Shown: positions 22,837 through 63,029 of the stretch, piece after piece
Layout of the letters: the number at the start of each line of letters is the position of its first letter
Numbering within the stretch: position 1 is the first letter of the stretch
Assembly (NCBI GenBank): GCA_965240325.2
Contig: OZ251227.1
Coordinates: forward strand, 1,798,001 to 1,862,000
Reading direction: 5' to 3'
Source of the DNA: Rebecca billardiae RCC1528
Taxonomy: Eukaryota > Protista > Haptophyta
DNA length: 64,000 nt
Notes under the pieces: generated by a model
The model's input: the letters and a program-made list of their open reading frames with translations, nothing else
Told to the model about the DNA's origin: nothing
Database searches by the model: none
Made by a program: the position numbers and the translations under genes

Positions 22837-23373
22837 GCTCGGTCAATCGCGTGCGCCTGCCGCGACACCATCGTTGGCGACGGCAACGCGCGCGAACTTC
22901 GGAATTGTTTTTGGTTATTGGCCTCGCGCTCACCTCATTTTTAAGCGAGCTGTCACAGAGTGTTTGTTTTTTGGTTTTTTGAGCAGCCGCAACGCGGCGG
23001 TGCACTGGGTTCAGCTAATAAGCCGCGCGTCGCGCGTGTGACTGCACGACCGACTGTCAGTGTCAGCTGTCTGTCTAGTGGTATAACAAGTATGTTCGCT
23101 GCCACGGCACTGCGACGCCGATCATCAGAATAATGGTGCCATCGGAGCTGATGGCCCTGCGTTCCGACGATTGGCGCGAGGAGCCGCGCCCGGTCCCGGA
23201 GACGGCGGAGAGGTACAGGATCGACAAGTCGCGGTACTCCAGTAGACATCAGGCGGAAAAACCTGTGAGTGTCGCTTTCGTCATCGGACTTGTTGAGGAC
23301 ATGCTGAGCCGCGGATGTCGCGGCGCTCCCCGGCCGCCGAGCCGATAGGGGGCTCGGCACGTGGTGTGCGCGT

Positions 23374-25372
23374 TCACTTCTTGAGCGGGCCCACAGCGTC
23401 GACGTTGGCAATCACCTTGCGCGCGTTCGCCTCGATTGCGCCCCAGTCCTCGGCGAGGACCTTGTCCAGCTCGAAGAGCGGCGCCTGCAGCCGGAGCGCG
23501 CGCGCGCGCACGGCCCGGGGCGCGCGGGTGAGGCGCGGCGCCTGCGGGGGCGGCGGCTGACGGGCGCGCGCGCGCGCGGGGTCGTCGCGCCCACGGGTGG
23601 CAGCGCACCACGAGCCCGACGCCAAAGGCGCCGTTGCGGAGGTAGTCGCCCGCGTTGTCCAGGTCGACGCCCGACGTCGGGTTGAGCGAGAGGCACGGCA
23701 GCGCCGCGCTGACCGCCTTGATCCAGTTCCCCGCGCCCGCCACGCCCGGGAAGATCTTCTGGATGGGCGCGCCCGCCTGGTACGCGGCAAACGCCTCGGT
23801 GGGCGTCTGGCAGCCGGGGATGACGACGATGTTGCGCATCGCGCAGAAGGTCACCACCTCGGGCACCAGGATCGGCGCGAGGATGAACTCGGCGCCCGCG
23901 TCGAGCGCCTGCTTGGCGTCCTCGATCGACAGCACCGTGCCCATGCCCACCATCACCTGGCGCGCACAGCGTGCACACGAGTGCGCGCGCGGGGAAGGGC
24001 GCGGAGGGGCGCGACGGGGCGCGGGGAGTGAGGCGCGCAGCCCTGAGGGGCAGGGGCGGGGGCGGGGGTGCCCTCGCGCCGCGTGCCGACGCGGGCGCAC
24101 CTTCGAGCCGTGCTTCGCGCGGAAGTCAGACAGGGTGTCGTGCACGCCCGGCGTGGTGAGCGTGAACTCGCAGATCTTGAAGCCACCCGACACGGCCGCC
24201 TCCATCGCCTTGGGCGCGAGCTCCTTGGTCGGCGTGCGGAGCACGGCGCACGCGCGGTACTGCGCGAAGGTGGCGATGACGCGCCTGAAGTCCTCCGTCG
24301 TCTTCATGTACGGGTCCTCCGACAGGCCCGGGTACTTGGCGAGCGAGCGGCGCGGCGCGGCCGTCGCGGGCGCGCGCTGCGCGGCCGGGCGCGGCGCCGA
24401 CGAACGGCCCGCCCACGTCGACATGAACTTGACGCCCTTCTGGGTGAGCAGCTTGCCAAGCGGCGACTCGGGCTTGATCGGCGGCTTGAAGGGGTAGTAC
24501 CTCCCTGCACGCCGGACGGCGCGCGCGGCGGCGCGATGGCGCGACAGACGGGCGGTCAGGCGCGGTGCAGGCGCGCGCGCGCAAGCGAGCGCGCGGCACG
24601 GCGCGAGGCGGCGGCGCGCACCGGGCGGCCCCGGGTTGGCGATGAGCTCATCCTTGATGATGTTCTCGATCTCCTCGCGGCCGTGCGCGATCTCGTACAC
24701 CTTCTCCGCCGCGGCCGCGGGCACGACGACCACGCCGTCCTGGTCGCCGATGATCGCGTCGCCCGGGCGGACGACGACACCGCCGCACGACATGACACCG
24801 TTGCACTCCCACGGCTGCATGATCGCCGGGCCCTGCTTCGCAGTCGTCGAGTACGAGAAGACGTTGAGCCCGTAGTTGATGAGCTCGTCGGTGTCACGCA
24901 CCGAGCCGTCCGTCACCAGGCCGCCCACCTGCCGCTGCTTCAGCCGGAGGAACTTGATGTCGCCGCCAACCGACTCCCACGGCCCGACCGAGGCCATCAC
25001 GAGCACCTCGCGCGGACCGCACAGCTCAAACGCCTCGTACTCGGGCGAGTCGACGCCGATGGGCTTGTCTGCCGCGACGTCGGGCCGGTGAGGCACGAAG
25101 CGCAGAGTCACCGCACGCCCCGCACACTTGTGGCCCTTGGCGAGCGGGCGCGCCCCCTCGATGAACGACGACGGCCAGCCCATGACCCACAGCCCGTCGA
25201 TCAGCGACTGCGTCGAGAGCGTCGCGAGCTTGTCGAGCATCGCGTCGGACACCTCGCCGCCCTTTGCGGGGCCCATGGCGAGGCACCTCGCCGCCGCAGG
25301 CTGCGCGAACGCCAGTGAGCGCGGCGCCGCGCGCGGCAGCGCGCGGCAGGCCCGGTGGAGTGCGAACGCCAT
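23374..25372 (-). CDS. Fusion of RraA-like/HMG-aldolase domain and KDPG/KHG aldolase (Eda-type), mitochondrial presequence
   Basis: RraA-type GGLVTDGSVRD and VRPGDAIIGDQDGVVVVP. Eda-type EFTLTTP, GMGTVL, GAEFILAP, PGCQTPTE, KIFP and PTSGV. Introns 24505-24621, 23957-24100 and 23485-23608. Confidence 0.88.
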
Positions 25373-25687
25373 TACGGCCAAATTGGTGCCGGGCGGCAGC
25401 GAGCTCGGCCGCCGATTGCCCGAATCGGCAATTGTCGGCACGTGGTGGGCTCGGGCGGCCGGAACGACGGTCGGCTTGCTATTGTTGTGAGTGTGCACGT
25501 TCGAAACATAGTCAACTGTAGGAATCTAGTCGGAGGTTCTCTAGTAAACCTTCGTCCGCGACGAACCAATCCGTTGCAATCCGGTGTTGTGGCCAGCTGG
25601 TTGATGAATACTTCTGCCCCGGCGGCTTGGCGGCATCACGGCCGGACGCAGACGCGTGGGGGCTTCATCATTTCGACGCTCAGGGCG

Positions 25688-27020
25688 ATGATGCGCGCGA
25701 TGTCTGCCTCCGCCGTGCGCCGCTCGGTCGCGCGGGGCGCGTCGAGCCTCGGCCTGCGCGCGCGCGCGCTCTCGTCCGTGCCGTCCACCATGAAGGCCGC
25801 CGTCATCCGCGAGACCGGCCCGGCGGAGGTGATGAAGATCGAGACGGACTACCCCGTGCCGTCGCTCAAGGACGGGCAGGTGCTCGTGCGCAACCACTTT
25901 GCGGGCATCAACTTCATCGACACGTACCACCGCAAGGGGATGTACCCGCGCGACCTGCCCTTCGTGGGCGGGCAGGAGGGTGGCGGCGAGATCGCCGCGC
26001 TCACGCCCAAGGCGGAGTCGATGGGCCTGAAGGTGGGCGACCGCGTCGCGTACTCGATCCTGCAGACATACAGCGAGTACTCGGCGGTGCCGGCTGACAA
26101 GGTGCTCAAGGTGCCGGACGGGGTGGGCCTCGACGTCGCCACGGCGTGCGTCGTGCAGGGCCTCACCGCGCACTACCTCACGCACGACGCACACGCGCAG
26201 CTCATCCAGCCGGGCGAGTGGTGCCTCATCCACGGCGTCGGCGGTGGCACGTGCCAGTGGGCCGCGCAGATGGCGCGGCTGCGGGGGTACAAGGTGATCG
26301 GCACGTGCTCGAAGGGGAAGGAGGCCGTCGGCAAGGCGACGGGCTGCCACGAGCTCATCGTCCTCGACGAGGTGCCCGGCAAGAGCTTCGAGGACTACAC
26401 GTCCGTGGACGTCGTGAAGCGCGTGATGGAGATCACCAACGGGCAGGGCGTCAAGGCGGCCATCGATGGCATCGGTGCGAAGCGGGCACACGCGCGCGCC
26501 TGCGCCGGGGGAGGGGCGTTCGCGACTGGGCGCGGCAAGAGGCGCCGGCACGCGGGCTCGGTCGCGTGATCGCATGCACGCAGCGCGCAGACGAGGGCGC
26601 ACCCGCAGCGACCACGTGCGCGCGGCCGCTACATGCGCGCATGGCCATCAGCTGACTGCCAGCGCCCGCGCGTGCACGCGCAACCCTCCGGCAGGCCTCT
26701 CGACGATGGACATCTCCATCGACTCGCTCGCGCGCCGTGGCATCTTCGTCTCGTTCGGCAACGCGTCGGGCGCCGTGCCCGCCTTCCCCGTGCTCCGGCT
26801 CATCGGCAAATCCGCCTTCGTGACTCGTCCGAAGCTGCTCGACTACACCGTCGATCGCGCCGAGCTCGACCGCCGCGCGGGGGACATCTTCGGCTGGCTG
26901 CTCGAGGGCAAGCTGAACGTGGCGATCGACCGCTCGTTCCCTCTGGATGAGGCGGTCGCAGGGCACCTGTACCTCGAGGAGGGCCGCAGCACGGGCAAGG
27001 TCCTGTACAAAATCGACTGA
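25688..27020 (+). CDS. NADPH:quinone oxidoreductase (zeta-crystallin/Qor, MDR family), mitochondrial presequence
   Basis: AGINFIDTYHRKGMYP, GLTAHYL, HGVGGG, SFGNASG, VTRP and STGKVL. Intron at about 26476-26694. Confidence 0.92.
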
Positions 27021-27605
27021 TGAGTCGGGCAGGCCACCGCACCGTCAACATCATTGCCGTGTCGTCAGCAGTTAGTCGGCCGCTGTCAGTGATGTAAGAA
27101 TTGGAGATCTTCAGACAGACAGGCTGGCAGGGAAGTTTCAAGAGGCACGGCCTCGGCCGCAGCGCCTGACGTTTCTAAGCCCTGACTGAAGCAGCGGATT
27201 CGCGCGGTAGTAAGTACACTATACGCCACCGAGTAATAATTAAACAGGTCTACGCAGAGTACCACTACCGGCGCCGCCGGCGACAACCAGTGAGTCCAGT
27301 GACGACTGTCACGTCGACTCGTCGCCGTCTCGCCGACACTCTGAGTCTGACAGTACGACCAGTCGACGATCATAAGCGCCCATTATTAAATATATATATA
27401 TACATATACAAGCGCCTGGCAATTATTGAAGCGGTCCGCGACGGCGAATTCAGCGCGCCCCTCCCCCCCAGACCGGCCAGACCCTGCTGCCGCCGCACCG
27501 GCCAACGCTAGGCCTAGCGTCACAGGTCTGACGCGCAGCGCGGCGGCGCGCCGCGCCACACGGCACACAGCGCGCGGCCCGGCATCGCAGACGAGTCCAC
27601 AACGC

Positions 27606-27772
27606 CAACGGCCAGGGCGACTACTTCCTCAACGGCCAGGGCGACTACTTAGTATTTCCCCCACGGCCAGGACGACTACTTCCTCAACGGCCAGGGCGGC
27701 TACTTTCTCAACGGCAAGAGCAACCCCGCCCGCGCACCGGCCAGGGGCGACTACTTCCCCCACGGCTAGGGA
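27606..27772 (+). repeat. Degenerate ~24-bp minisatellite (CAACGGCCAGGGCGACTACTTCCT), about 6 units
   Basis: Repeated CGGCCAGGGCGACTACTT units are visible. Confidence 0.85.
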
Positions 27773-29490
27773 GTAGGGAGTAGCAGGGTCAGCGCCATCC
27801 CCGACCGCACCGGCTGGCGTGAGCACGGACTACTTCGCACTGCGATTGCATCAACTCGGAGTCTCGGACCGTCAGCCGGGACCGACTCGCCCGGGGACCG
27901 ACGGCAGAAACGGCGTGACGACCAACGACTGCAAGTACTGAACTCTGTGACTAGGGCCTGTTTTATTTCTACCAGATTCCATTTACTATGTCACGGCGAC
28001 AAACCCGTGCTCGCCAGTGGGAATCGGTGTCACGCTCCGTTGGGTGTACCTCTCACGGCCGATGGCGGCCCCCACGTGCGCAAGGAATGCGATTCGTGCA
28101 CTCCTCGGTGACCGGTGAGTGCACGAATCCAGTTGCGGCGCTCGTCCGCCTCGTCGTTGTCGCACACGAGGTACACCCAACACCATGGGTCGGATCCCAG
28201 AACTCTCCGCGCGCTCGCGCCTGCGCGGCACTGGCAGGCTTGTTCTCATCATCTTGGCCAAGACTGCAGCCTGAAAGATGCGCGAGGGCGCGTGTGCACG
28301 CCTTTCCGCGCGTCATGGGTGCGCGTGGCACGCACCTTGTAATATTATACGCCGAGGAGGCCTGAGCATCCGGCCTACTAACCTTCCGCGATCACGTTCA
28401 AATGCAGGCAGCAAGCTGCAAGCAAGCGCACGCCGAACGGAAGCATCTCAAGCTCGACAAGGTAGTGGCGGCGGAGCGTTTAGAGCTGGTGGCGATTGCA
28501 GTCCATCTGGCTGTGAACTGGTCGCTAACTGACACGGGTGCGACGCAGCAGCCAAGGCAGAGTGCTTGCAGCTTGCAGAGGGCCTCCAGCTGCAGCGCCG
28601 GTTTGCCGCCGCTCGCCGCCGCTGCATCGTGCACACTGCCGTGCACCGCGAGTGACCCCTGTGTCAAGGCGAAGCACCACGGCAAGGCGAATCAGCATGT
28701 CTGACAACACCCTTCGCCACAGCGCAGCGCCTCAACACGAGAATGCGCGAATGACGTGCCATCACTTCTCCGGACTAGCTCCGGGGCCCGCACCAGCGGG
28801 CAAGCCGCCATTGTACCGCGTTTTGGCGAATGTCGCCTTTGGGCTCTCGTAGAAATAAAACAGGCCGAAGCGGCATCTCTGGGCACCTGGTTATGGTACT
28901 CCCTCCCTATGATCCGGCATCGGCGACGACTCCCTCACCCGCGGCCAACGCGCTGCTCACATCCTCCGTCTCCAATCAGTTCAGTGAGTTCTTCGACAGA
29001 CGAATCAGGAGAGCTGCGTCCTAGGCTCATGCCTGTGTCTTTAAGTCCTAGAATCAGCACATCAGTCATCATATATATATATATGTCTAGCCGTCCTCGA
29101 AGCGCCTGCGCCATCCAGATGCAGCGAGGAGGCGAGGCACACGCCGGGCAGGGCGGAGCCACGCGGCGAGATACCAGACTTCATACATTGTATCATATGG
29201 GATTTTGGTCCTCGGAAAACAACGTGCGAGCGGCAGCCACTTGAGCCAGCGCTCGGGCCGCGGCCCAGGAGCATCACAGCGAGTAAGTTGTTCGGGGTCG
29301 TTGTGCGAGCGCACAGAGCAGGCTCGAAAGTCCCTCGTGGCACGAGAAGAGGGTGGCCAAGATGGCAGCCGGACTTGAGCTCGGCCGCCTAGCTCGGGCC
29401 GAATGGCAGGCAGGTGTTGATACGGCGCATTGCGCTCCCACCGTCCTCCTAGACAATCAGTTATTGTGCCAATAACCCCACATATATATA

Positions 29491-29493
<3 letters not shown>

Positions 29494-29541
<48 letters not shown>
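29494..29541. repeat. (CA)n microsatellite, followed by a 2x TGTCCCAGGTTGTCC..CATCAAGATA direct repeat (about 29580-29640)
   Basis: Directly visible. Confidence 0.9.
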
Positions 29542-29544
<3 letters not shown>

Positions 29545-29695
29545 TTTTCCATACGTACGATTGAAGAAATTTTTTTTGGTGTCCCAGGTTGTCCCGTCAT
29601 CAAGATATATATAGTGTCCCAGGTTGTCCTCATCAAGATAAATGTTGCTGCTGGTACGCTCACTGCGGCTCACGCTGTCTGCGACTGCGCCAACG

Positions 29696-31234
29696 CTACT
29701 TCGAGCGCCGCGACTGCGACTGCGCCAACGCTACTTCGAGCGCCGCGATGCCGCGCGGAGGAAGCCGCGTGGTCCACTTGGCATCGACGAAGCCGGCCTC
29801 GAGCGCGCGCATGCGCAGCATCCGTGCGCGCATCTCCGCGGTCGGCTTGCTTACGTAGCCCCAGGCGGCCACGCGCTCACCGCCGTCGAGTGGAGCGCTC
29901 GCACGCGTGTGCAGCGTGGTGTGGTTGTTGTACACGACAGCCGAGCCCTCGGGCAGCTCAAAGGGTGCGGCGAGGCCCGGCGCGTGCAGCAGCTTGCACC
30001 ACGCCGCGTAAGCGCGCATGTAGTCGTGATACTCACCGAACGGCAGCTCGGCCATCACGGCGCGCTTGGACTCCGAGTGCATGATCCTGTTAACGGAGCC
30101 ATCCGGGCGCAGCTCGATGATGGGGTGCGTCTGCAGCGCCTCGTACGCGCCCTCGTGGTCGTGATCAAGGTTGCACGGCGCGCCTTCGAGCGTGTAGTGC
30201 ATCGTGCGCACGTTATGCACGATCGGAGTCTTGGTCAGCAGCCGAAATGCGTCGGGCATCGTATCGCGCAGTGCCTCGGCAGCTGTGAGGCCATTGACGA
30301 CGCTCGAGCGCACGGTCCCGCGCGCCTGCAGCAGCCACTGCATGTAGCCCGGCACGCCCGCGTAGAACGAATGGTCCGTGTGGAAGCCCAGAGGATTGCT
30401 CAGGTCGTAGTCTGTGTTGGACACCGCCACCGCCGCGCTCGAGCGGAGAACGCCTGTGCGCGTGCGGCGACGAGGGTGCTCGACCATCCGCCCAATTGTC
30501 GCCCGCACGAGCGCTTCGAGAGGGGCGCCAACTGCACTGTCGTCAGCAAGATCTGCGGCTGTGCCCACGCCGTGCACGATGGCGATGCCTTCTGTCGCCA
30601 CCGTCTCCAGAAGACGCAGCTGTTCATCGGCTCCAGCTGCGCCTGGCGCGATGAGCGCGCTCGCACTAAAGGCGGCGGGCACGTGCTCAGCGGCCCAGCG
30701 TGCGGCAGAGGTGCGCGTGAGTTCGTCGAGCGTGGTGTAAGTGGCGCGGGTACACGAAATGGAGTCCTCGGCACCAGCCTCAGCGCGCACGTCTCCGACC
30801 AGCGGCCCCATCGCGCGCAGCCAATCGGAAGGGAAGGCATGAGCCTCCTCTGACGCAGCAGCGGCGGAGCCATCCGTGTGCGACGCCGGCAGCAGCTCGC
30901 CAGACGCCGGCACGAGGAGGTTGACGCGAAGGGCATCGCCACCCTGTAGGTCATAATCACTGGCGACGGACGCGTCGATCGCCAGCGCATCGAGGCTGCG
31001 CGCAAAGTCACCCGGGTGCTCGCGGCGGAAAGAGCGCGTGCAGATCGCCGGCGACGAATCGCGCAGCCACGCAGAGTGGAACGCGACGCGCAGGCCGTCC
31101 TCCCACGCGACGCAAACGTGCCGGCCAGCGGACTCGACGTGTGCTGACGCAAGAGCGGCGGCACCCCGTGGCGCTTGGGCCGCGCAGTTGGTGGCGAGGG
31201 TCGCGAAGAGGCGCCGTGGAGCGGAGAAGAGCAT
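29696..31234 (-). CDS. Fe(II)/2-oxoglutarate dioxygenase, gamma-butyrobetaine/trimethyllysine hydroxylase (TauD) family, intron-less
   Basis: FHSAWLRD N-domain, LGFHTD (HxD), HPII and YNNHTTLHTR (distal His and Arg). Mitochondrial-like presequence MLFSAPRRLFATL. Confidence 0.88.
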   Translation of the reverse strand: MLFSAPRRLFATLATNCAAQAPRGAAALASAHVESAGRHVCVAWEDGLRVAFHSAWLRDSSPAICTRSFRREHPGDFARSLDALAIDASVASDYDLQGGDALRVNLLVPASGELLPASHTDGSAAAASEEAHAFPSDWLRAMGPLVGDVRAEAGAEDSISCTRATYTTLDELTRTSAARWAAEHVPAAFSASALIAPGAAGADEQLRLLETVATEGIAIVHGVGTAADLADDSAVGAPLEALVRATIGRMVEHPRRRTRTGVLRSSAAVAVSNTDYDLSNPLGFHTDHSFYAGVPGYMQWLLQARGTVRSSVVNGLTAAEALRDTMPDAFRLLTKTPIVHNVRTMHYTLEGAPCNLDHDHEGAYEALQTHPIIELRPDGSVNRIMHSESKRAVMAELPFGEYHDYMRAYAAWCKLLHAPGLAAPFELPEGSAVVYNNHTTLHTRASAPLDGGERVAAWGYVSKPTAEMRARMLRMRALEAGFVDAKWTTRLPPRGIAALEVALAQSQSRRSK

Positions 31235-31439
31235 CTTCTGGCGTGCGAGGGTGTGAAGAGTCGTCCTCGCCGGCGCCCGGCGCGGGGAGCGGATCCCCAA
31301 TCTCGCCTGCCTGAGTTGTGTGCGTCTCTTATTCTTACCGGTAAACTGTATAACCCTCTTGATGATGAACAAGTGTGCACGTTCAATATTAATTTTGCAC
31401 GTTCAATATGAATTTGTCGTCTTGTCGATGTTTAGCTTA

Positions 31440-32037
31440 CAGGTGGATACGGGTGATCTGGACAGTGGCCGACCCAACTCACGCGGAGGCCTCCCTGGGA
31501 GCATTGGGGTCGAAGGGGCGCCAGGGACGGACTTCAGGGGGTCCCTGCCTGGAGTTCCGCCACAGCGCGCTTTCTGCGCTGCGGGCCCGTCTCCGCGCGT
31601 GGCGGCCGCAATGGCACTGTCCAATTAGCCCCTGGCACTGGCTGAGGCATGGGAATCGAGCTCAGAGACGCGCGCGCCGAGGAAAAGCGTGTGCAGCGGC
31701 TCGGACGGTTGCTCTGGGACCTACCCACGCCAGCGCAACCGCGCCTTGCCTCGGAGTCCGCCCTTCCTGAGTCCGCGCACGCGCCTTGCGGCTTGAAACG
31801 CTGGCGTTCGCCCTTGTGCGCGGGACTCACGAAACAAGGCGAAGGCGGCGAGAAGCGCGACCTGGCGCGTGCGCAGACGACGTCTCACGACCAGGTGAGT
31901 TCAGCGAACATCGTGCGCCGTCGTGGCGACCCGCCAGTGGGCGCTCGTGCTCGTTCGCCCACGAGCCCTCGCCACGAGGCCCGCCGCCCGCTGAGTGTCC
32001 AGATAGCCCCTGTGTCCAGTTAGCCCGTATCCACCTG
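31440..32037. mobile_element. MITE-like element, TA-flanked, imperfect ~25 bp TIRs CAGGTGGATACGGG...CTGGACA
   Basis: TA|CAGGTGGATACGGGtgatCTGGACA at the left end and TGTCCAGttagCCCGTATCCACCTG|TA at the right end. No credible ORF. A regulatory reading is given in the findings. Confidence 0.6.
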
Positions 32038-32262
32038 TACAATCAATTCAGCGACTCCCTCGGCCGTACTTATAATTACAATCCAGGTGCATCTAATCTC
32101 CCGTAACGGTCGCGCCCTCGTGCCTGTGTCTTTAAATCATAGAATTGGTCGAGCACCCCTCGCTAGGCGAGGGGTGCTCGACCGTTACGGGAATCCCGCT
32201 GCTCAGGAACCACGTGCTCCGCGGGTCTTGTCACAGCAGACCGTGCGCGGTCCTCGTCGCCA

Positions 32263-33738
32263 ATGAGCAGTCCGTCGGGCATCCGAGTTCGTGCGCGCGT
32301 TCACACCGCCGCGTTCGAAGGGCTCCGCGGTATCGCGGCGCTCCAGGTGAGTCTGGGTCACTTCTGCCAGTTCATGCTCTACCAACCACTCGTGTACTTC
32401 AATGGCACGGCGGCTGTACAGCTCTTTTACGTGCTGGCCGGATTCATGACGTGCCTCGCCAACAACGAGGCGCCCTCGTCGGAAGCGGGGGGCTGCGGTC
32501 CGTTCGCGCGCCGATTCTGGGCTCGCAGGGTCGCCCGTCTTGGCCCCGTCAATTGGCTTTCGATCGTAGTTGGCACGCCGATCGCCGCCCTCCTGCACCC
32601 TCGGCCCCCGTGGCTCGTGCCGCTTAACGTCCTCCTGGACGCACTCTTTGTGCAGGCGTGGGTACCCGTCTTTCATTTGGTCAACGGGCCGCTCTTCTTC
32701 ATGAATGGGCTTGCGCTGTTCTACGGCGTGTTTCCCGCCATCCAGCGCCGCACGCAACAGCCGCGCTCAGCGCAGCGTGTCGTTCAGCTATGCTGGCGGC
32801 TCTGGGTTGCATACGTGGTGCTCTTTGTGCTGATTGCGGCTGCTTTCGAGTGCACCATCTCGCCTACCCCGGGCAGTTTGCCGTCGCAGACGCCGACCAC
32901 CGCCGAGATCCTGCATCACGCGCGGCAGATGGCCCACAAGCACCCGTTGAGTAAGCTCCCCTTGTGCTTGATTGGCGCAGTGGTCGGCAGCTATGCAATG
33001 GCCCCCGCTGCCGACACCGCTGCAGGTGCCGAGGGCAGCTCTATCGCTGCGACGAAACCCGCAGCGTCCTTGCGCTGGGGCGGTGTTGCGAATGGCTGCG
33101 CTTTGGCTTACGCACTCTTCACGCTCGCCTTCCTCTGCGTGCCGCTGATCGCCTTCCAGACTTGTGGGTACGAATACGCCTGGATTGCTGAGGATGCCTT
33201 CGCATACACAGCTGATCTGCTGCCTGGGCCGGCGTTCGCGCTGTGGCTTTACGCCCTGACGCAGGCGCCCGGCTGCGCAGCGGAGCGCTTCTTATCGAAT
33301 GCGCTCCTCCAGTGGATTGGCAAGATCTCCTACTCATGGTACTGCATACATTTTCCCCTTTTCTACATCTGCGCATGGCTGAGGGGGCTGGCGCGCGCAC
33401 CTGATGACGGGATCGCTCCCCGCTATGCCGCCGGCTGGTCTGGATCCCCGCTGCTGCAATGGTGGGAGATTGTGCCCGTCATGGCCGTGGTGGCGATGGT
33501 GAGTGCTGCTGTCCATCGCTGGGTCGAAGAGCCCGCGCGGCGGATCATCTACCGTCTCGTCGACGGCACTCCTGCAACGGCCGCAACCCCCGACGATTCG
33601 ATGGCGACACGGCGTCCCTGGCGCGGCGATGATGGATCTGATGCTGGGACCGGTATCGAACGCCGGTCGCTGCAGACTATGCCTGGTAGTTCTCTGATGA
33701 CGTCGAATACGCCGAAGACGACGATGCCATTGGTCTGA
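32263..33738 (+). CDS. Acyltransferase-3 (OafA/YrhL-like) multi-pass membrane acyltransferase, intron-less
   Basis: FEGLRGIAALQVSLGH, AVQLFYVLAGF, FWARRVARL, WIGKISYSWYCIHFP and HRWVEEP. Confidence 0.9.
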   Translation: MSSPSGIRVRARVHTAAFEGLRGIAALQVSLGHFCQFMLYQPLVYFNGTAAVQLFYVLAGFMTCLANNEAPSSEAGGCGPFARRFWARRVARLGPVNWLSIVVGTPIAALLHPRPPWLVPLNVLLDALFVQAWVPVFHLVNGPLFFMNGLALFYGVFPAIQRRTQQPRSAQRVVQLCWRLWVAYVVLFVLIAAAFECTISPTPGSLPSQTPTTAEILHHARQMAHKHPLSKLPLCLIGAVVGSYAMAPAADTAAGAEGSSIAATKPAASLRWGGVANGCALAYALFTLAFLCVPLIAFQTCGYEYAWIAEDAFAYTADLLPGPAFALWLYALTQAPGCAAERFLSNALLQWIGKISYSWYCIHFPLFYICAWLRGLARAPDDGIAPRYAAGWSGSPLLQWWEIVPVMAVVAMVSAAVHRWVEEPARRIIYRLVDGTPATAATPDDSMATRRPWRGDDGSDAGTGIERRSLQTMPGSSLMTSNTPKTTMPLV

Positions 33739-33752
33739 CGACGCGACAATAA

Positions 33753-33755
<3 letters not shown>

Positions 33756-33785
<30 letters not shown>

Positions 33786-33837
33786 GCCTCATGGCCCGCG
33801 GTGCTATCTAGTATCTATCTATCTATCTATCAGTATC

Positions 33838-33885
<48 letters not shown>

Positions 33886-33908
33886 GATAGATAGATGATA
33901 GATAGATA
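33756..33908. repeat. (CAT)n plus (TATC)n/(GATA)n microsatellites between convergent genes
   Basis: Directly visible. The TATC and GATA blocks are reverse complements. Confidence 0.93.
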
Positions 33909-33984
33909 TTTACATGTGTACAATATGTGTACAGTACGTACGGTATCATACGTACGTGCACGTTGACGTGTCGCCGATCAATGA

Positions 33985-34716
33985 TTAGATGAAGCCACGC
34001 ACCAGGTAGAGTGCGCACGCGGCGATCTCGCGCACAAAATCGTGCACAGACGGACCGATATCCACCATCGCAGTGTTCGCCACGTCATCAGCATGAGCAG
34101 CAGTGGTGCCATCAGCTGCGCAGGGGACCACGAATGTACAGCCCGTCACGCCCAGGTCATGCGCGGCTTTGCGGAACGTGCGCAACGAGCGCCACTCGTG
34201 GAAGGTTGAGGTGACGAGTGCGACGGTGCCAGATGATCGGGGCGAGGCGGCACACGCGAGCATAGGGATCGTCAGCATGGCGTTTAGCCGGGTGGAGGTC
34301 GACGCGCGCTCCACGCGCAGCGTCGGCTTTCCCGTGGGCTTGAGTACGCGATACAGGAACGCGGCCATCACGTCCGCCTCTGTCGGCAGGTTGGCACGGA
34401 CGCGCCAGCCAGTGCCCCCAGAGCAGAAGATCGTTGGCCGTGGATGCGTGAAGGACCACAGATCGGCGGCGCGCTCGAGGCGGCTCTGGAGCGTACGTGA
34501 GGGGGTGCCACGCTGATGGTCGACGGCGTAGCCGAGAACGACGATCTCTCTGGGCCTATATGCGGGCGTGAGCCTTTCACATGCTGACAGCACGTGCGCC
34601 ATGCGCTGTGGTAGCTGCAGGTAGCCGACGCGCATGGCGAGCGCGAATGCGAGCGCCATCCCCATCAGCCCGGTCGTTGTGCAGCATGCTAATGCGAGCC
34701 GTACAAGGCGCGTCAT
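33985..34716 (-). CDS. DUF218 (YdcF/SanA/ElyC-like) protein with N-terminal TM, intron-less
   Basis: IVVLG, SRLERA, SGG, TEADVM, ERASTSTRLNA, LVTSTFHEWRS and VREIAA. Confidence 0.88.
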   Translation of the reverse strand: MTRLVRLALACCTTTGLMGMALAFALAMRVGYLQLPQRMAHVLSACERLTPAYRPREIVVLGYAVDHQRGTPSRTLQSRLERAADLWSFTHPRPTIFCSGGTGWRVRANLPTEADVMAAFLYRVLKPTGKPTLRVERASTSTRLNAMLTIPMLACAASPRSSGTVALVTSTFHEWRSLRTFRKAAHDLGVTGCTFVVPCAADGTTAAHADDVANTAMVDIGPSVHDFVREIAACALYLVRGFI

Positions 34717-34744
34717 GCCGTCGCGCTGCGCTGCAACGGCCTCA

Positions 34745-34844
34745 TTGCCCGTATCCACCTGTACGCCGTTACGCGCACGTGCCCGACGTTATTCATCAAT
34801 GCGTTCACGAATCACGTTCACGTTGTACAGGTGGATACGGGCAA
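34745..34844. repeat. Perfect 20-bp inverted repeat TTGCCCGTATCCACCTGTAC / GTACAGGTGGATACGGGCAA with 60-bp spacer
   Basis: Copies at 34745-34764 and 34825-34844, with the same core as the ends at 31438 and 32039. Confidence 0.92.
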
Positions 34845-35970
34845 GGGCGGTAAGGGCTGTCAACTCCCAGTGGCGCCGAGTGGCGGAGGTTGGTTGCCCC
34901 TCAACTCGTGCGGCCTCGCGGCGCAGCGGCTAAGTCTCCTGGGGCGCCGCCCAGGAGGGCGCGTGGGGTGCGCACGCCGCGTGCTCCTGCGGCCGCGGCA
35001 GCGGCCGCGGACACGGCGCGCGTGGTTGGTCGCATGCTAGACAGTATGTAGTACCCTCCCACGCCGCGCGCCGTGCTCGCCGGTGCCCTCGCCGTGCCTC
35101 AGGCCAGCCGCGCACGCGCGCCGCACCAATGGCCAGCCGTGGCCACGCGCCAGCCGCCGGCGCGCGCGCGGTGCGCGGTGCGGTCGGCGCGGGTCGGGCG
35201 CGCGCCCGGGGCGAGGCTTGTGTATGATGGGCGCGCGTCATGCCGCCTCGCGCCGCCGCGCTGGAGCCCGCATGGGTCGGCGCGCACGCGTTCTCATGCT
35301 GTCGAGTGTGCATTGCCATGTTTGAAAATGCTCATGTTGAGACGATCATGGGAAGGCAGCGACGCGTGATAGACAAGCGCAGACCACTGATATGAGCACG
35401 ACTAGCATCATACTATGGCACGCGAGCCCCCAAGTGCTCGCGTTCCTCGCACTGATGCGCTCACAGCCGCTTGTCCAAGCTCATTTCTGATGGCCGAGGA
35501 ATGCTCGACGAGCACCCTTCAGCAGCCGCGTGGAACGTGATCAAGCTCGTGTGCGGCGGCGCGAGGCGGCATGACGCGCGCCCATCATACACAAGCCTCG
35601 CCCCGGGCGCGCGCCCGACCCGCGCCGACCGCACCGCGCACCGCGCGCGCGCCGGCGGCTGGCGCGTGGCCACGGCTGGCCATTGGTGCGGCGCGCGTGC
35701 GCGGCTGGCCTGAGGCACGGCGAGGGCACCGGCGAGCACGGCGCGCGGCGTGGGAGGGTACTACATACTGTCTAGCATGCGACCAACCACGCGCGCCGTG
35801 TCCGCGGCCGCTGCCGCGGCCGCAGGAGCACGCGGCGTGCGCACCCCACGCGCCCTCCTGGGCGGCGCCCCAGGAGACTTAGCCGCTGCGCCGCGAGGCC
35901 GCACGAGTTGAGGGGCAACCAACCTCCGCCACTCGGCGCCACTGGGAGTTGACAGCCCTTACCGCCCTTG
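34842..35970. repeat. Long inverted repeat IR2: arms 34842-35259 and 35553-35970 (418 bp), 293 bp spacer
   Basis: The arms appear to be exact reverse complements. Identical mirrored ORF translations appear in the track. Confidence 0.95.
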
Positions 35971-36125
35971 GTGAAGTCGTGCCTTTGTTCTCGTGGGTTT
36001 CCAGAATATATATAATAATAGTGCTCGGCGGTGACCTCCGCCGCCGGCGATCCCGCCGGAATCCCAGTAGTGGGGACGACGTACGACGATAGGGCTCCTG
36101 AATTTTCGTCGTGCGCGGTGGTGGG

Positions 36126-37109
36126 ATGATCTCTCGACGCACGGCTCGAGCGTGCACCCGAATCCTTCCCGTGACGGCTCGTTGGCTCTCAGCCGACGCG
36201 GTGCGTGGAGCAGCCCCCTGCCGCTGGGCACGCACGCCGACGGATGACGGCACGCCCATCGCTGAGCACGTGAGCAAAGTCATCGATGAGTATGACCCAC
36301 CGCACGCGCGCAAATACTACCAGCACGTCCTTGGTGGGGGCGGGCATGGGATTCGCTACGGCATCTTTCGTTCTGCGGCAGACACCGCTCACCAGACCTC
36401 TCTGGAGACCAGCTCCAGGCTCATCACCAGCCTCGACTGGATCCGTCCGGTGACGCCAGGCTCGATGGTGCTCGACCTGGGCTCGGGCCACGGGGGCATC
36501 AGTCACGAGCTGGCGCGGCGCTTCGGATGTTCTGTGCACGGACTCAACCTGTCGGAGAATCAGAACGAAGTGAACCTTGCTGAGGCTGCGCGCCTTGGCA
36601 TTGCGGACAAGGTCCACGTGGTTTGCCACGATTTCAACAACCCGCTCCCTCCAGACTACGACGGGACGTTCACACACATCATCTCGTGCGACGCCATGTT
36701 CCATGCCTACTCCAAGCAGCGCCTCGTGGCCGAGCTCTATCGCGTGCTTGCTCCCGGAGGTGCCATCGCGTTCACCGACATGTGCCGCTCTGAAACTGCT
36801 TCCAGTGATGTGCTCGAGGTGTACACGGCGAAAACCCCGGCAGGCAAGATGACCTCTGTGTCGGAGTACACGTCCATCATGCAAAGCGCTGGCTTTCGCC
36901 ATCCTTCCTTCGTGGACTTCTCCGCGCACCTTGTGCCGTGCTTTCAGCAGATGCTCGACGCGACGCGCTCGAAGCGAGAGCTCCTTCTCGCCGAGGGTTG
37001 CCCCGCAGACTACCTTGACAAGTGGGAGTGGTCACTCGACAAGCGCATCCGTGACCAGCTCGACCATGAGATGTTGGTGTGGGGCATCTTCTCTGCCCGC
37101 AAGTTCTGA
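36126..37109 (+). CDS. Class I SAM methyltransferase, sarcosine/dimethylglycine-MT / DsyG-DSYE-like, intron-less
   Basis: VLDLGSGHGG, YRVLAPGG.IAFTD, N-terminal EYD..HARKYY..VLGGGG.GIRYGIF and C-terminal WGIFSARK. Arg-rich presequence. Confidence 0.85.
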   Translation: MISRRTARACTRILPVTARWLSADAVRGAAPCRWARTPTDDGTPIAEHVSKVIDEYDPPHARKYYQHVLGGGGHGIRYGIFRSAADTAHQTSLETSSRLITSLDWIRPVTPGSMVLDLGSGHGGISHELARRFGCSVHGLNLSENQNEVNLAEAARLGIADKVHVVCHDFNNPLPPDYDGTFTHIISCDAMFHAYSKQRLVAELYRVLAPGGAIAFTDMCRSETASSDVLEVYTAKTPAGKMTSVSEYTSIMQSAGFRHPSFVDFSAHLVPCFQQMLDATRSKRELLLAEGCPADYLDKWEWSLDKRIRDQLDHEMLVWGIFSARKF

Positions 37110-39630
37110 TGAGGTTGGGTCGCTGCCACTCCTGGCTGACATACCGCCATCTGATGAATCCGAAATTGGTCACACCGTCCAAGCGGGAGTCCCTGAGCCG
37201 CTTAGCTGCTGCGCCGCCGGCCGCCATCCCGGGCCCCGACGGGCCAGTGACTTAGACTTAGTCCAATTTCGTAGCCGGCAAGTGAGCCGGACGGCCCGGG
37301 TGGCCCGCGGCGGCGCCGCTGGCCCGCCCCGGCCGGCTGCCAGGCGGCCAGGCGGCTGGATTCCCCCGCGGCCCCCGGCCGCTCGGCCAAGCGTGCGTTG
37401 TGGCGCGTACGTGCGACGGAGAGCGCTGGTGCGGGCTGGCAGCGGCGCGCTGGCACGCCACGTGCCTGTAGTCCGTAGTCGTGCTACGCCGTTCCGTGCT
37501 CAATGAGCTCAATCCTGCAACCGCGACGGCAGGCCGCGGTGGCGCGGCGTCCGCGCCGCTCCCGGCCCGGTTGCGGGCTTGGTCAGCCCAATGGTTGGCC
37601 GCGCCGACACGAGTCACGCGCGGTGTGCTCGGCGCGATGGCCCCCGCTTAGGCGGATATGGCATGAGATGGCGGATGGGTGATGATGAAGAGACTAACTA
37701 CTGCTATGGAGGCCAGTCATTGCGCCGCAGGCGCGCTCTGCAGAGCAGTCTGTCTGGGACCACTTCCTGCACTGCGACGGCCTCGGCCCGGGCCCGTGGC
37801 GCGCGCCTGCCGAAGCGCACCCAATCGGGGCCTGCTCAATCAATCGGGGTGCGAGCACAGCCCGCGAGCCCCCTCCCCCCCCCCCTCCCCGGCCCCCTGC
37901 TGCCCATCAGCCCTTCGAGCACGGGGTGCAGTGCCTCCCGCCCCCACATAAGGACATGGCCATGGGGGGGGGGGGGGTATACTGACAGTTATCGGGACGG
38001 TCGGTAACCCTGCCAAGCTGTGTCCTTCCAAAGGACCTTTGGTCCTTCGGCTTCAGTGGGGCCTGAACGGATATCCCCCTGCAACAGATACGGGACTCAG
38101 TCGGCTATGCCATAGGACAAGATCACCAGAGCGCCAGCGCCTCAGTTCTGCGCGTACGATCATCGGTGTGGCTATATCGTACACACAACTCAACCGGCTA
38201 TTGATTGACACACACCGTCTCCGCCTGCCGCCACTGCTACAGCGATCGGGCGCGCGCGCGCGTACGCGCGCGCGCGCGCGCTCGGTTGTGGCGGACAACC
38301 GACGTCCAGGGACGGCCCCACAACCAGCACATGACAGCGTCAGTTGCTCGCCCCTGGCAGCCGAGCGGCGACCCTGGGCACGGACAGCGCAGGCGAGTGC
38401 TCGCGCCGGATGCCCGCGCCGCCGCCCGCACCGCCGCCCACGCCGCCACGGGCGCGTTGCTGCCCGTAGCACACCGATTCTGGGGCGGGGCGAAGAGAGG
38501 GCAACCGCCATCGTGCTGGGTAGGACGGAAACGAGCCTCCCGGACTCCCCCCGCCGCTGGGAGGCCGTGTTTCGATCCGCTGCGGTGCTGAGGTTGGAAG
38601 CGCCCGGCGTCTCGAAGGCGCCCACCTCGCGACCCTCCCCAACCGACCCCCGCCGCCCGCGGGCGGGCTGCTGGGCGCACGAGCGCGAGCTGGCCGCCGG
38701 CGTGAAGCCGAGGTGGAGCCAACTCGCCCTTCAGCTCGCAGGACGCCCGGCTCCTGAAGCCGACCGCCCGGTGTGCGCGCATCCGCCTGCCTGCTTTGGC
38801 GCGGAGGCAAAACCGTACGGCCCATCGGCCGCCGCCGCCACGCGGCAGCCAGTCGGGGTGTCGTGTCGCGATTTGCGGGTGCGCGCCTCGCGGGGCAGGT
38901 GGCACTGTCCCGCCCGGTCGCTTCCGATCAACGAAATTCCCTCGCAAGCGCCCGCGAACGCTGATCCTCGCCGCGGGCTCGCCGGGGCCCGCATGTGCGC
39001 ACCCGGGTGCCCCAGTCGAGCCAGTCTGGTGCGAGCATCGAACGACGGTACGGGCCGGGCGGCGTGGTGCGCGACGTCACCGAGACTGCGGGCCAGCTAG
39101 GCACCGCTTGCGCGCCCACCAGCAGCCTGTGGGCCGACCACGCGTTCAACCGTGCACCCGATGGCAGTCACGGTGCTCTTCGGCTGGAGCGCGCCGTGCG
39201 CTCAGACGCGAGCGGCCGCCAAGTTGCCGGGTAGACGCGGTGCGCACGCTCTAGCAGCTGCGGATCAGCATCGCGCGAAGCTCTGCTGCCCCCACCTGAA
39301 TGCTCGCAGCACCCACCACACGGCCAGCCGGCCGCGCGCGGCGCGCGGCCACCTCACCGGGTCTGCCGCGCACCCACCACACCGCCAAGTTGTCGGGGGG
39401 GGGGGTGTCCGGGGCTTAGGTCCGGGTCTGCAGACTGTGTTGCTGTTGTCGCTGATAGTCCGTGAGTCCGTGACCAAGGTTGGCGCAGGACTCTTCCTTT
39501 CCCCGTTGACCCCGCATGACCACCGGATCCACGTTCGGCTCGGTGCGCCAAGATGCACCAGCCACGCGCGAATGGCCTGGTGCGATGCGCGGCGCGGCCA
39601 GGAGTGGGTATCCGCCACCCGGGGCTTGGG

Positions 39631-58604: not shown

Positions 58605-60007
58605 TCAGCCCTGTCGCCTGTCGCCGACAATCTGCGCCCACTGCCGCTGCCGCTCGACCACGGACGCCACGCGCGCGCGGTGCTCGTCTCCCACCGTCGA
58701 GCGGTCCGCCGGCGATGCCGTTTGCGCGGCGCGCCCATCGAAGTAGGGCGAGCTCGAGGCGTGAGCACCGTCGCGCGGTCCACCCCACGCCGGCGCGAGC
58801 GCACCGCCGCCGTGCGCGCCGGCTGCCTTGGCGGCGGCCGCGAGCTGAGCGGCCTGTGGGACGTTGGGCGTGCGCGCTGGGCTCAGGGGCGAGACCGCGC
58901 GCACGTGCTGCGCGCCGCCGTGCGTTGCGCTGCTCGTATTCAGCGCGCTCGGCGCCGCAGGGGCGAGCGCACGCCGCCGCGGCGAGCGCGCGCCCGCGCC
59001 CGGCTGCGCCGCGGCGCGCAGAGGTGAGGCGGCGCGCTCGGCTGGCGCGGGCGAGCGGCTGCGGTGGCCACCGGCCGGAGCGGCGTGTTGGTGCGCGGCG
59101 AGCTCGCGCTCCTTCGCCTCGAGGGCTGCGGCGTGCTGCGCCGCCTCGCGCGCGAGGTGCTCCCGGATCGCCGCCACGTGGCCGCTGTATTCATCGATGG
59201 TGGCTTGCAGCATGGCTGCCGCCGGCGTGGCGGGGCGCGCACGCACAAGCACCCGAGCGCGCGGCGCGGGCGCGCGGCACGCGCTCAGCCGAGGGCACGC
59301 GCGCGCCGGCGTGGCACGCTCGCGCCGCGACGCGCGCGGCCGCGCGCGGAGCCGGGCGCGTGTGCCTCGGCGCTCGCGCACTCGCGTCGCGCGCGCGCGC
59401 GCGCGCGCGCGCACCCGCGCTCTCGGCTTGGTGCGCCGCCACGGCCTCCGCCACCGCCCGGTCTGCGCGCACGCGCACCGCGCGGCCGAGAGCGCGCGCG
59501 ACCTCGGACGCGTCGGGCTCGGCGGCGGAGACGGAGGCGAGCACCGCGGCGCGCGCCGCCGCCGCGCCGGCCGGGTCGACGAGCGCGCCGCCGCCGTCGC
59601 CGCCCGGCGCGCCGCTCGGCGGCGGCGCGAGCGCATCCTCCGCCGCGCGCCGCACGCCGGCCGCGAGAGACTCACACGCGGCGCGCGCGGCGCTCAGCTC
59701 GGCGGCGCGCTTGCTGCGCGCGGCGGAGCGGCGCAGCGCGGCGCGGCGGCGGGGGCGGCGCGGGGACTCAGCGCGGGCGCGCAGCCGAGGGCGGACGCAG
59801 CGCGCGCACGGAGCCCGCGGCTGTCTCGCGGCGCGCGAGCGCTTCGGCGGCGCGGGCGAGTGCTTCCGCGCTCCCGCGCGGTCGCGCCGCGCGCGCGCAC
59901 CGCACGCGCGCCTGAACTCGCCTCGCCGCGGCCGCGCTTGCGCCGTTCGCGTCGTTGCCGCCTGCCGCGCCGGGCGGCGGCGCGCGCGGCAGCGCCGCCG
60001 AGCCGCC

Positions 60008-60049
<42 letters not shown>

Positions 60050-62988: not shown

Positions 62989-63029
<41 letters not shown>

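Follow-up and report, generated by a model that had tools for sequence, protein, structure and literature searches.

Four adjacent genes and their genomic setting

Genes for a dioxygenase, an acyltransferase, a DUF218 protein and a methyltransferase lie side by side in the window (the whole stretch of 64 kb that was analyzed, from a GC-rich haptophyte alga). The question raised by this locus is whether the four genes belong together, and whether they form a single biosynthetic pathway, as a reading of the sequence alone had proposed. The four adjacent intron-less genes in two divergent pairs that this sequence-only reading had described were found as intact ORFs of four different families within 7.4 kb, and its family assignments were right. 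Under the usual description of a eukaryotic metabolic gene cluster, at least three adjacent non-homologous enzyme genes, the block qualifies by its gene content. The first head-to-head pair consists of a 2OG/Fe(II) dioxygenase gene of the GBBH/TmpA fold (29696..31234, minus strand; 512 aa from the first ATG; Pfam TauD, 1.1e-16, with a sub-threshold match to GBBH-like_N) and an acyltransferase-3 (AT3) membrane protein gene (32263..33738, plus strand; 491 aa; PF01757, 80 bits with a cut-off of 31, model positions 3-321 of 326). The second consists of a DUF218 (YdcF/SanA-type) gene (33985..34716, minus strand; 243 aa from the ATG; PF02698, 66.2 bits versus 27.6) and a gene for a divergent DSYE-like SAM methyltransferase (36126..37109, plus strand; 327 aa). 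The AT3 and DUF218 genes are convergent, with 246 bp from stop codon to stop codon, and microsatellites (TCA, CTAT, TAGA; 33755..33908) fill this gap. A perfect 35-bp tandem duplication (29679..29748; TRF, 2.0 copies, 100%) lies across the stop codon of the dioxygenase gene, whose product ends in ...SQSRRSK with the duplication, whereas a single copy would give ...SQTA.

The absence of introns was supported by the dioxygenase and the methyltransferase, which align with their homologues end to end. However, long uninterrupted ORFs also occur elsewhere in the window, one of 2,383 codons and several of 450-800, and the lack of introns is not distinctive for the block within the window. The GC3 of the four genes was 0.74-0.79 in comparison with 0.85-0.95 in the nearest clear genes, which agrees with the excess of A/T-ending codons reported earlier. 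However, GC3 values of 0.71-0.81 were also found for HSP90, G-patch, Rpp14 and one further ORF in another low-GC stretch (0-6.5 kb). The bias thus follows regional GC and is no sign of foreign origin, and it does not mark the block as special. The left flank (27021..29695), which has lower GC (0.59-0.62), and the right flank (37110..39500) contain no recognisable gene; no Pfam-recognisable ORF, coding GC pattern, tRNA or Rfam match was found in 27.0-29.7 kb and 37.1-39.5 kb. These flanks had been called repeat-rich and gene-poor: they are indeed gene-poor, but repetitive to a modest degree only. All four genes look like diverged eukaryotic nuclear genes and not like a bacterial or viral island.

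A 16-mer common to the four upstream regions

The exact 16-mer CCCGTATCCACCTGTA, with the E-box-like core CACCTG, occurs four times, with one sense-oriented copy upstream of each gene. No fifth site was present in the 64 kb even with up to 3 mismatches (0.15 expected). In each of the two divergent promoter regions, two copies form an inverted pair, and the geometries of the two pairs are opposite. Between the dioxygenase and AT3 genes, copy 1 (31438..31453, minus strand) is in the sense orientation for the dioxygenase, about 204 nt upstream of the ATG, and copy 2 (32024..32039, plus strand) is in the sense orientation for AT3, 223 nt upstream of the ATG; both lie in the arms of a 27-nt inverted pair. 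Between the DUF218 and methyltransferase genes, copy 3 (34748..34763, plus strand) points toward the methyltransferase at 1,362 nt upstream of the ATG (233 nt after subtraction of an inverted-repeat structure), and copy 4 (34826..34841, minus strand) is in the sense orientation for DUF218, 109 nt upstream of the ATG, and abuts the inverted repeat. This repeat (34842..35970) has 426-nt arms that are 99% complementary and a 277-nt spacer, and it ends 125 nt from the DUF218 ATG on one side and 155 nt from the methyltransferase ATG on the other.

Similarity flanking the 16-mer copies ended at the 16-27-nt core, and none was significant in the adjoining segments, which argues against a recent segmental copy. 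The presence of the 16-mer in all four upstream regions lends independent support to the view that the four genes belong together. The arrangement TA/CAGG...CCTG/TA looks like a terminal inverted repeat flanked by a TA target duplication. A second large inverted repeat, similar in geometry to the one at 34842..35970 but not related to it in sequence, is located between the genes of another divergent pair (4912-5813).

The four proteins and their predicted compartments

The AF2 model of the dioxygenase (pLDDT 82) was compared with known structures by Foldseek. The best matches were human BBOX1, TmpA and DfmD (E 6.5e-20 to 5.8e-15, TMt 0.72-0.80), and a second tier followed only at E 1e-8. The modeled fold is thus clearly that of GBBH/TmpA/DfmD. 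The protein has a DUF971-like N-domain and a TauD fold, in which the facial triad H285/D287/H442 and the 2OG-binding R454 are conserved. In BBOX1, Y177, W181, Y194 and Y366 form the aromatic cage for the trimethylammonium group. In the profile alignment, two of these four cage positions, both Tyr, have a counterpart in the dioxygenase (Y276 for Y194 and Y460 for Y366), and a clade-invariant QHPxR takes the place of the Y177/W181 loop. The protein scored far below the NCBIfam equivalog cut-offs for gamma-butyrobetaine dioxygenase (TIGR02409, 93.7 versus 414.75 bits) and for TmpA (NF049936, 74.2 versus 400). Its family is eukaryotic, with members in Florenciella, Chromera, Didymoeca and Bolivina, and it belongs to a protist clade whose closest members are fusion proteins that also contain a TPP 2-oxoacid-decarboxylase-like domain and an aldo-keto reductase (AKR). 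Neither a TPP enzyme nor an AKR was found in the 64-kb window.

The best relatives of the methyltransferase, at 41-51% identity and 80-88% coverage, included P0015, P0029 and P0038, which are DSYE entries in Supplementary Table 3 of Wang et al. 2024 (PMC11306096), where DSYE is the algal MTHB S-methyltransferase of DMSP synthesis. By identity and coverage the protein falls within DSYE, and the earlier DSYE-like call agrees with this. However, conservation of the DSYE-invariant residues was incomplete: only 64 of the 96 positions with a conservation of 95% or more were kept, and the 32 changes were clustered in three blocks. In the tree, which was built without clade D (pavlovophyte) sequences, the protein joined the DSYE group (support 83/82 versus bacterial outliers) within a polytomy that did not assign it to any of the clades A-E, on a terminal branch of 2.06 in comparison with a median of 0.16 (about 13 times longer). 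The methyltransferase is thus a relative of DSYE that evolves very fast. When it is compared with P0015, one of the listed DSYE sequences, its PDB similarity has moved from SDMT toward plant PMTs. The exact protein was also present on two Logan contigs, which were colinear with 35983-37564 of the window.

Mitochondrial-type presequences had been assigned to the dioxygenase and the methyltransferase. The first 33 aa of the dioxygenase and 23 aa at the N-terminus of the methyltransferase contain no acidic residues and have a high content of Arg, Ala, Ser and Thr; Arg-rich N-termini also open many dioxygenase homologues, and the methyltransferase has gained an extra segment of about 45 aa relative to DSYE. 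This composition fits mitochondrial targeting, but is not proof of it. The predicted compartments differ, since the dioxygenase and the methyltransferase would be soluble proteins with presequences and AT3 and the DUF218 protein would be membrane proteins with hydrophobic segments. AT3 has at least six strongly hydrophobic segments, and the DUF218 protein has a single N-terminal hydrophobic anchor (residues 7-25). Homologue searches gave no informative close homologue of either protein, and no sequence similarity of the DUF218 protein to any solved chain was detectable. The nearest language-model clusters were eukaryotic AT3 proteins for AT3 and bacterial for the DUF218 protein, whose relatives are labeled as SAM-binding YdcF in the Atlas clusters.

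Explanations for the block and comparison with known systems

We tentatively prefer to regard the block as a co-regulated neighbourhood of four ordinary nuclear eukaryote-type genes, and not as a demonstrated biosynthetic cluster. One DNA-binding factor would control all four genes through the 16-mer, which is the only, indirect sign of co-expression; because the copies are inverted in pairs, two per bidirectional promoter, every gene has one sense copy upstream. The methyltransferase would be derived from DSYE, or sister to it, and its substrate is probably other than MTHB, because several DSYE-invariant motifs are rewritten. The dioxygenase would be a hydroxylase, probably acting on a small zwitterion. 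These two enzymes would act on small charged metabolites, while a membrane or lumenal substrate is more likely for AT3 and the DUF218 protein. A pathway would be shared at most between the methyltransferase and the dioxygenase. The block may belong to a stress or nutrient response. Several observations count against this preferred reading: the 16-mer pairs could be transposon ends, the 1.1-kb inverted-repeat structure lies between copy 3 and the methyltransferase, the window contains neither the TPP nor the AKR partner typical of the dioxygenase clade, AT3 and the DUF218 protein lack informative close homologues, and the linkage was not seen in ten other contigs, none of them from a close relative.

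A somewhat unlikely alternative is that unrelated genes have come together by chance and that the 16-mers mark the termini of small transposons (MITE or foldback) which inserted into the two promoter regions. Copies 1 and 2 bound a TA-flanked 602-bp segment with 27-nt inverted ends, copy 4 abuts a foldback-like repeat, the divergent pair at 4912-5813 has its own inverted repeat, and conserved linkage was not found in ten contigs, none of which came from a close relative. However, the 64 kb contain no further 16-mer, and each of the four copies can be taken as a sense copy upstream of a gene. The segments next to the copies show no significant similarity, in contrast to members of a single transposon family, and the two large repeats are not related. 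A recently acquired bacterial or giant-virus island is highly improbable. The low GC3 in comparison with the immediate neighbours, the lack of introns, the gene-poor flanks and the bacterial clusters nearest to DUF218 would suit it, but eukaryotes supply the nearest relatives of the methyltransferase, the dioxygenase and AT3, and the N-terminal extensions are eukaryotic in type. GC3 also matches that of housekeeping genes at 0-6.5 kb, where GC is likewise low, and pattern scans of viral contigs and 185,579 prokaryotic genomes showed no relative.

The pathway of the sequence-only reading, in which all four genes would methylate, hydroxylate and O-acylate to give an acylated hydroxy-betaine or sulfonium compound or a betaine-lipid head group, is in our judgment unlikely. 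The adjacency of the genes and their common 16-mer, the descent of the methyltransferase from a sulfonium-forming enzyme family, the use of the dioxygenase's fold for trimethylammonium substrates and the SAM-binding label of the DUF218 relatives speak for it. However, comparative support was lacking: none of ten contigs with a dioxygenase or DSYE homologue (eight dioxygenase contigs of 3-9.6 kb and two DSYE diatom loci of 20 kb; none from a close relative) had partner families nearby. In addition, the closest relatives of the dioxygenase are fused to TPP and AKR domains and not to a methyltransferase or acyltransferase, the predicted locations are split between presequences and membrane segments, and the family distributions differ, with the dioxygenase also found in a choanoflagellate and a foraminifer. 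A second DMSP-type route, in which the methyltransferase would be an organellar DSYE isoform that S-methylates MTHB and the dioxygenase would process DMSHB toward DMSP, is quite improbable. DMSHB is a close analogue of gamma-butyrobetaine. This route agrees with the identity and coverage of the methyltransferase relative to the listed DSYE, with the binding of onium-butyrate substrates by the GBBH fold, and with the fusion partners in the dioxygenase clade (AruI-like decarboxylase of a cationic 2-oxoacid, and AKR), which would suit 2-oxo/2-hydroxy acid steps. However, one third of the DSYE-invariant positions are altered, and these changes fall in the motifs that all DSYE clades conserve most strongly. 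The dioxygenase family is also present in heterotrophs not known as DMSP makers. In Wang et al. 2024 (PMC11306096), there were DsyG-like proteins at about 39% identity that showed no activity.

In comparison with known systems, the dioxygenase shares with BBOX1, TmpA and DfmD the two-domain fold (DUF971-like N-domain and TauD-type jelly roll), the HxD...H triad and the 2OG-binding Arg. However, its identity to them is only 16-21%, it is about 120 residues longer, its N-domain has lost most of the Zn-binding cysteines, and its closest relatives, unlike these enzymes, carry the fused TPP and AKR domains. The methyltransferase keeps SAM motif I, the conserved His and the C-terminal WG(I/L)F motif of DSYE, but the GGGGxDIHYG, SCEVLCHAA and TDIMGADGADEKxLKDFTDRNATT blocks are rewritten, and a presequence-like extension replaces the usual TGDFKGKQF N-terminus. 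AT3 resembles acyltransferase-3 proteins of the OafA/OatA/NolL type in its full-length PF01757 match, its multi-pass form and its N-terminal ...GLRGIAAL...H motif, but it has no SGNH partner domain and no close homologue was found. The DUF218 protein matches PF02698, as do YdcF, SanA and ElyC, and like the latter two it has a membrane anchor at its N-terminus; unlike all three, it is eukaryotic.

Layout and composition of the block

The most interesting results of this analysis are a fast-evolving DSYE paralogue, a protist dioxygenase clade with TPP-AKR fusions and a promoter word shared by four neighbouring genes. The sequence-only reading had placed four ORFs at 29696-37109; all of them lay exactly there, and Pfam confirmed each family call. 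The dioxygenase gene (29696-31234, minus strand) encodes 512 aa, with the first ATG (31234) taken as the start and the stop codon at 29696-29698. The acyltransferase-3 gene (AT3; 32263-33738, plus strand) encodes 491 aa, the DUF218 gene (ATG at 34716, minus strand) 243 aa, and the class I methyltransferase gene (36126-37109, plus strand) 327 aa. The gene order was divergent, convergent, divergent, with intergenic gaps of 1,028 bp, 246 bp and 1,409 bp; the 246-bp gap between AT3 and DUF218 was microsatellite almost throughout.

The window is very GC-rich for eukaryotic DNA (about 0.68 overall; 0.85 in the last 5 kb). The bias of the block towards A/T-ending codons, claimed earlier, was seen against the immediate neighbours, but it did not set the block apart from the whole window. 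GC3 was 0.74-0.79 in the block genes and 0.85-0.95 in the nearest clear genes (the aldolase fusion, ADH, histidine phosphatase, Vps41 and Patched-like genes), whereas values equally low, 0.71-0.81, were found in HSP90, G-patch, Rpp14/Pop5 and one more ORF at 0-6.5 kb, a second lower-GC stretch. Because of this second stretch, the codon bias appears to follow local base composition and gives no sign of foreign origin; the origin of the block is probably eukaryotic. The block ORFs were uninterrupted, as had been said, but so were many others across the window, including a Patched-like gene of 2,383 codons. At 59000-64000, GC was 0.84-0.87 with long overlapping ORFs in every frame, an extreme that no other part of the window showed.

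The flanks (27.0-29.7 and 37.1-39.5 kb) had been called repeat-rich and gene-poor. They contained no Pfam-recognisable ORF, coding GC periodicity, tRNA or Rfam match, but their repetitiveness was only modest. The block itself likewise had no match to an RNA family and no tRNA. About 2.7 kb to its left, at 23252-27020, there was an RraA-like/KDPG-aldolase fusion gene together with a zinc alcohol dehydrogenase gene that runs over two frames, with the frame change between two ORFs. Since this pair had a GC3 of 0.87 and lacked the word shared by the block promoters, it was left out of the block.

Shared word and repeats in the promoters

The 16-mer CCCGTATCCACCTGTA, beside which a 20-mer word, GCCCGTATCCACCTGTAC, was also named, occurred in four exact copies, at 31438 (-), 32024 (+), 34748 (+) and 34826 (-), which form an inverted pair in each divergent promoter. 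It was found nowhere else in the 64 kb, even when three mismatches were allowed (expected 0.15). The distance from the sense copy to the ATG downstream of it was 204 nt for the dioxygenase, 223 nt for AT3 and 109 nt for DUF218. The copy facing the methyltransferase was 1,362 nt from its ATG, or 233 nt when a 1,129-bp inverted-repeat structure was subtracted. This word is the strongest evidence that the four block genes belong together, and the block is probably a co-regulated neighbourhood. Should a role as cis-element be borne out, the 16-mer would offer a rare means to study haptophyte gene regulation and would mark a co-regulated algal gene neighbourhood.

The inverted repeat at 34842-35970 has 426-nt arms, 99% complementary, around a 277-nt spacer, so that one and the same 426-nt sequence lies ahead of both genes, 125 nt from the ATG of DUF218 and 155 nt from that of the methyltransferase. 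It resembles a mirror-image bidirectional promoter and could give equal regulation of the two genes. A second inverted repeat, at 4912-5813 (311-nt arms, 97% complementary, 280-nt spacer), lies between a divergent unknown ORF and Rpp14/Pop5; kinship of the repeats at 34.8-36.0 and 4.9-5.8 kb was rejected, since their geometry was similar but their sequences were unrelated.

ACGT-core words accompanied the 16-mer in both promoters (31376-31415 and 34770-34825): TTGAACGTGCA occurred twice upstream of the dioxygenase and CACGTG upstream of AT3, while AACGTGAACGTG and CACGTG were present in the DUF218/methyltransferase promoter. A 29-nt direct repeat, 90% identical between 29026-29054 and 32117-32145, had one copy that precedes the AT3 ATG by about 118 nt and another about 640 nt past the dioxygenase stop, in the gene-free left flank.

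The dioxygenase clade and the question of one pathway

The nearest NCBIfam models of the dioxygenase were gamma-butyrobetaine dioxygenase and TmpA, both matched far below their equivalog cut-offs. A word-based homologue search found no match, and an exhaustive HMMER search found 346 relatives, of which 24 had E < 1e-30. These 24 were 29-43% identical to the query, and the apparently complete ones were about 500 aa long. The named relatives came from Florenciella, the choanoflagellate Didymoeca, Chromera and the foraminifer Bolivina, and the language-model neighbours were also eukaryotic. A metagenome scan with a profile from a 9-sequence alignment detected 40 loci, most of 1.6-2.1 kb, a size consistent with transcripts. 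Clade-specific pattern scans of prokaryotic genomes and viral contigs revealed no relative.

The family alignment identified H285, D287 and H442 as the facial triad and R454 as the 2OG-binding residue. An AlphaFold model made from the alignment (pLDDT 82, pTM 0.84) best matched three 2OG dioxygenases of the GBBH-type fold, human BBOX1, TmpA and DfmD (E 6.5e-20 to 5.8e-15, target TM 0.72-0.80), ahead of a next tier at E about 1e-8; the family profile aligned with BBOX1 over its full length (E 2e-27). In the profile alignment, Y276 and Y460 corresponded to BBOX1 Y194 and Y366, but a clade-invariant QHPxR replaced the loop that carries Y177 and W181 in BBOX1. All four of these BBOX1 residues belong to its aromatic cage for the trimethylammonium group. 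D275, E388, K390 and R391 were invariant in the nine closest sequences. Judged from sequence, a small, charged and probably zwitterionic substrate is plausible. The literature searched held no DMSOP-forming dioxygenase and no algal butyrobetaine metabolism. The dioxygenase stop codon lies within a perfect 35-bp tandem duplication (29679-29748), which looks recent and harmless because only the last residues are altered (...SQSRRSK-stop instead of ...SQTA-stop).

Several relatives were long proteins in which a complete TPP enzyme (N, M and C domains) and an aldo-keto reductase (AKR) are joined to the dioxygenase. P0213 (1,441 aa) and a single ORF at L009:197-4582 (1,461 aa) had this architecture, P0076 (1,318 aa) lacked the TPP N domain, and the gene of P0067 had a TPP gene immediately upstream on two contigs. 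Such TPP, AKR and GBBH-like dioxygenase proteins of about 1,450 aa (also on contigs L006/L007) were observed in marine protists. The TPP part scored 374 bits with its nearest subfamily, 5-guanidino-2-oxopentanoate decarboxylase, whose cut-off is 500. In the family tree, the dioxygenase of the window fell in a seven-member clade (99% support) that holds all the fusion proteins; because of this, its nearest relatives appear to act together with a reductase and a TPP enzyme of decarboxylase-like type. The fusions, which look like an uncharacterised three-step enzyme, point to 2-oxo or 2-hydroxy acid chemistry. The uncharacterised clade occurs widely across metatranscriptomes of marine protists, and its recurrent fusions provide a concrete pathway context. 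No TPP or AKR gene was found anywhere in the window when such fusion partners were sought.

The two remaining products seem to be membrane or lumenal proteins, whereas the methyltransferase and dioxygenase are soluble. AT3 matched PF01757 over its full length and had at least six strongly hydrophobic segments; a homologue search gave only three weak partial matches, and its language-model neighbours were eukaryotic AT3 clusters. The DUF218 protein had a single hydrophobic anchor at the N-terminus, and its nearest language-model clusters were bacterial YdcF. It matched no solved structure by sequence, and a pattern scan of prokaryotic genomes found no close relative. Viral contigs were scanned for the methyltransferase, dioxygenase and AT3 as well, with no match.

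Our preferred reading, held tentatively and with considerable doubt, is that the four genes share their control, that the methyltransferase and dioxygenase act on small onium-type metabolites, and that AT3 and DUF218 serve a separate membrane function. The sequence-only reading had joined all four products in one methylate-hydroxylate-acylate pathway, which we consider improbable even though the four genes share a promoter word. The fusions of the dioxygenase clade gave this scheme no support. The other three families were absent (tblastn, E 1e-3) from eight dioxygenase contigs of 3-9.6 kb (L005-L009, L027, L036 and L045) and from two 20-kb diatom loci, L003 and L004, that carry DSYE, the algal MTHB S-methyltransferase of DMSP synthesis. 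This argues against one conserved pathway, though weakly, because none of the ten contigs came from a close relative. The family distributions also differed, in that the named DSYE matches were algal whereas the dioxygenase reached into heterotrophs.

The genes may instead be adjacent by chance, amid transposon-derived repeats, which seems rather unlikely. The 16-mer pairs, reading TA/CAGG...CCTG/TA, may be the terminal inverted repeats of a transposon, flanked by a duplicated TA target. Significant similarity around the copies ended at a 16-27-nt core, however, which makes a recent duplication, segmental or of a transposon body, less likely. The geometry of the pair was opposite in the two promoters, outward-facing in one and inward-facing in the other. 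A narrower version of shared control, which we also hold to be improbable, is a mitochondrial module of methyltransferase and dioxygenase, controlled through the 16-mer, that makes or transforms an onium zwitterion; as substrate one would expect a 2-hydroxy/2-oxo acid or a butyrate-type compound, in sulfonium or ammonium form, such as a relative of DMSHB. If that were true, the dioxygenase clade with its TPP-decarboxylase-like and AKR partners would supply missing algal osmolyte steps, one candidate being oxidative and decarboxylating steps after S-methylation.

The DSYE-like methyltransferase

The nearest NCBIfam model of the methyltransferase was sarcosine/dimethylglycine methyltransferase, matched far below its equivalog cut-off. 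A large-database search found 46 proteins, the best of which (self excluded) were 41-51% identical over 80-88% of the query; the named relatives were from diatoms and pelagophytes. Three of them, P0015 (Synedropsis MMETSP1176), P0029 (Chrysocystis MMETSP1165) and P0038 (Chrysoreinhardia MMETSP1166), are listed as DSYE by Wang et al. 2024 (PMC11306096, Supplementary Table 3), so the earlier call of a DSYE-like protein was correct. In a diatom, at L004:10001-11913 on a 1.6-Mb contig, the DSYE-type gene of P0004 adjoins a class II aldolase gene (PF00596), and P0004 falls in the same 90% cluster as an Epithemia clementina protein.

In a maximum-likelihood tree built without pavlovophyte clade D sequences, which are printed in the supplement of Wang et al. 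2024 (PMC11306096), the methyltransferase joined the DSYE group in a polytomy, with a terminal branch of 2.06 changes per site (median 0.16). Of 96 positions conserved in at least 95% of 37 DSYE-type proteins, 64 were kept and 32 changed. The changes clustered in three places: the GGGGxDIHYG block, SCEVLCHAA (here SCDAMFHAY), and TDIMGADGADEKxLKDFTDRNATT (here TDMCRSETASSDVLEVYTAKTPAG). No change was seen in SAM motif I (VLDLGSGHGG) or in the conserved His. The open reading frame and its coding-type GC pattern show a gene under selection rather than one in decay. In exact-sequence look-ups, the methyltransferase alone of the four was found, on two Logan contigs colinear with window positions 35983-37564, both beginning 13 nt beyond the right end of the inverted repeat, a start that fits neither an RNA nor a DNA origin of the contigs well; they independently confirm its sequence, though not its transcription.

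DSYE serves as a marker gene for counting DMSP producers in ocean 'omics data. Wang et al. 2024 (PMC11306096) saw no MTHB methyltransferase activity in DsyG-like proteins of about 39% identity, and counted survey matches from 40% identity and 70% coverage upwards. The methyltransferase would pass this filter, and a diverged DSYE paralogue with rewritten conserved motifs could thus be miscounted as a DMSP producer. It also offers a natural experiment in substrate-specificity change within the DSYE family.

Against solved structures, the methyltransferase gave 80 bits with plant phosphoethanolamine N-methyltransferases (PMT) and 72 bits with Galdieria SDMT; for the listed DSYE P0015 the order was reversed, with 89.5 bits for SDMT and 44 bits for PMT. 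SxDxxxH and TDxCRS were common to the methyltransferase and the PMTs. Its T237 and A239 align with the phosphate-binding R179 and Y181 of Plasmodium PMT, and for this reason it was rejected as a PMT despite the raised scores. In place of the usual DSYE N-terminus, it carries a 45-residue extension rich in Arg, Ala, Ser and Thr, with its first acidic residue not before position 24.
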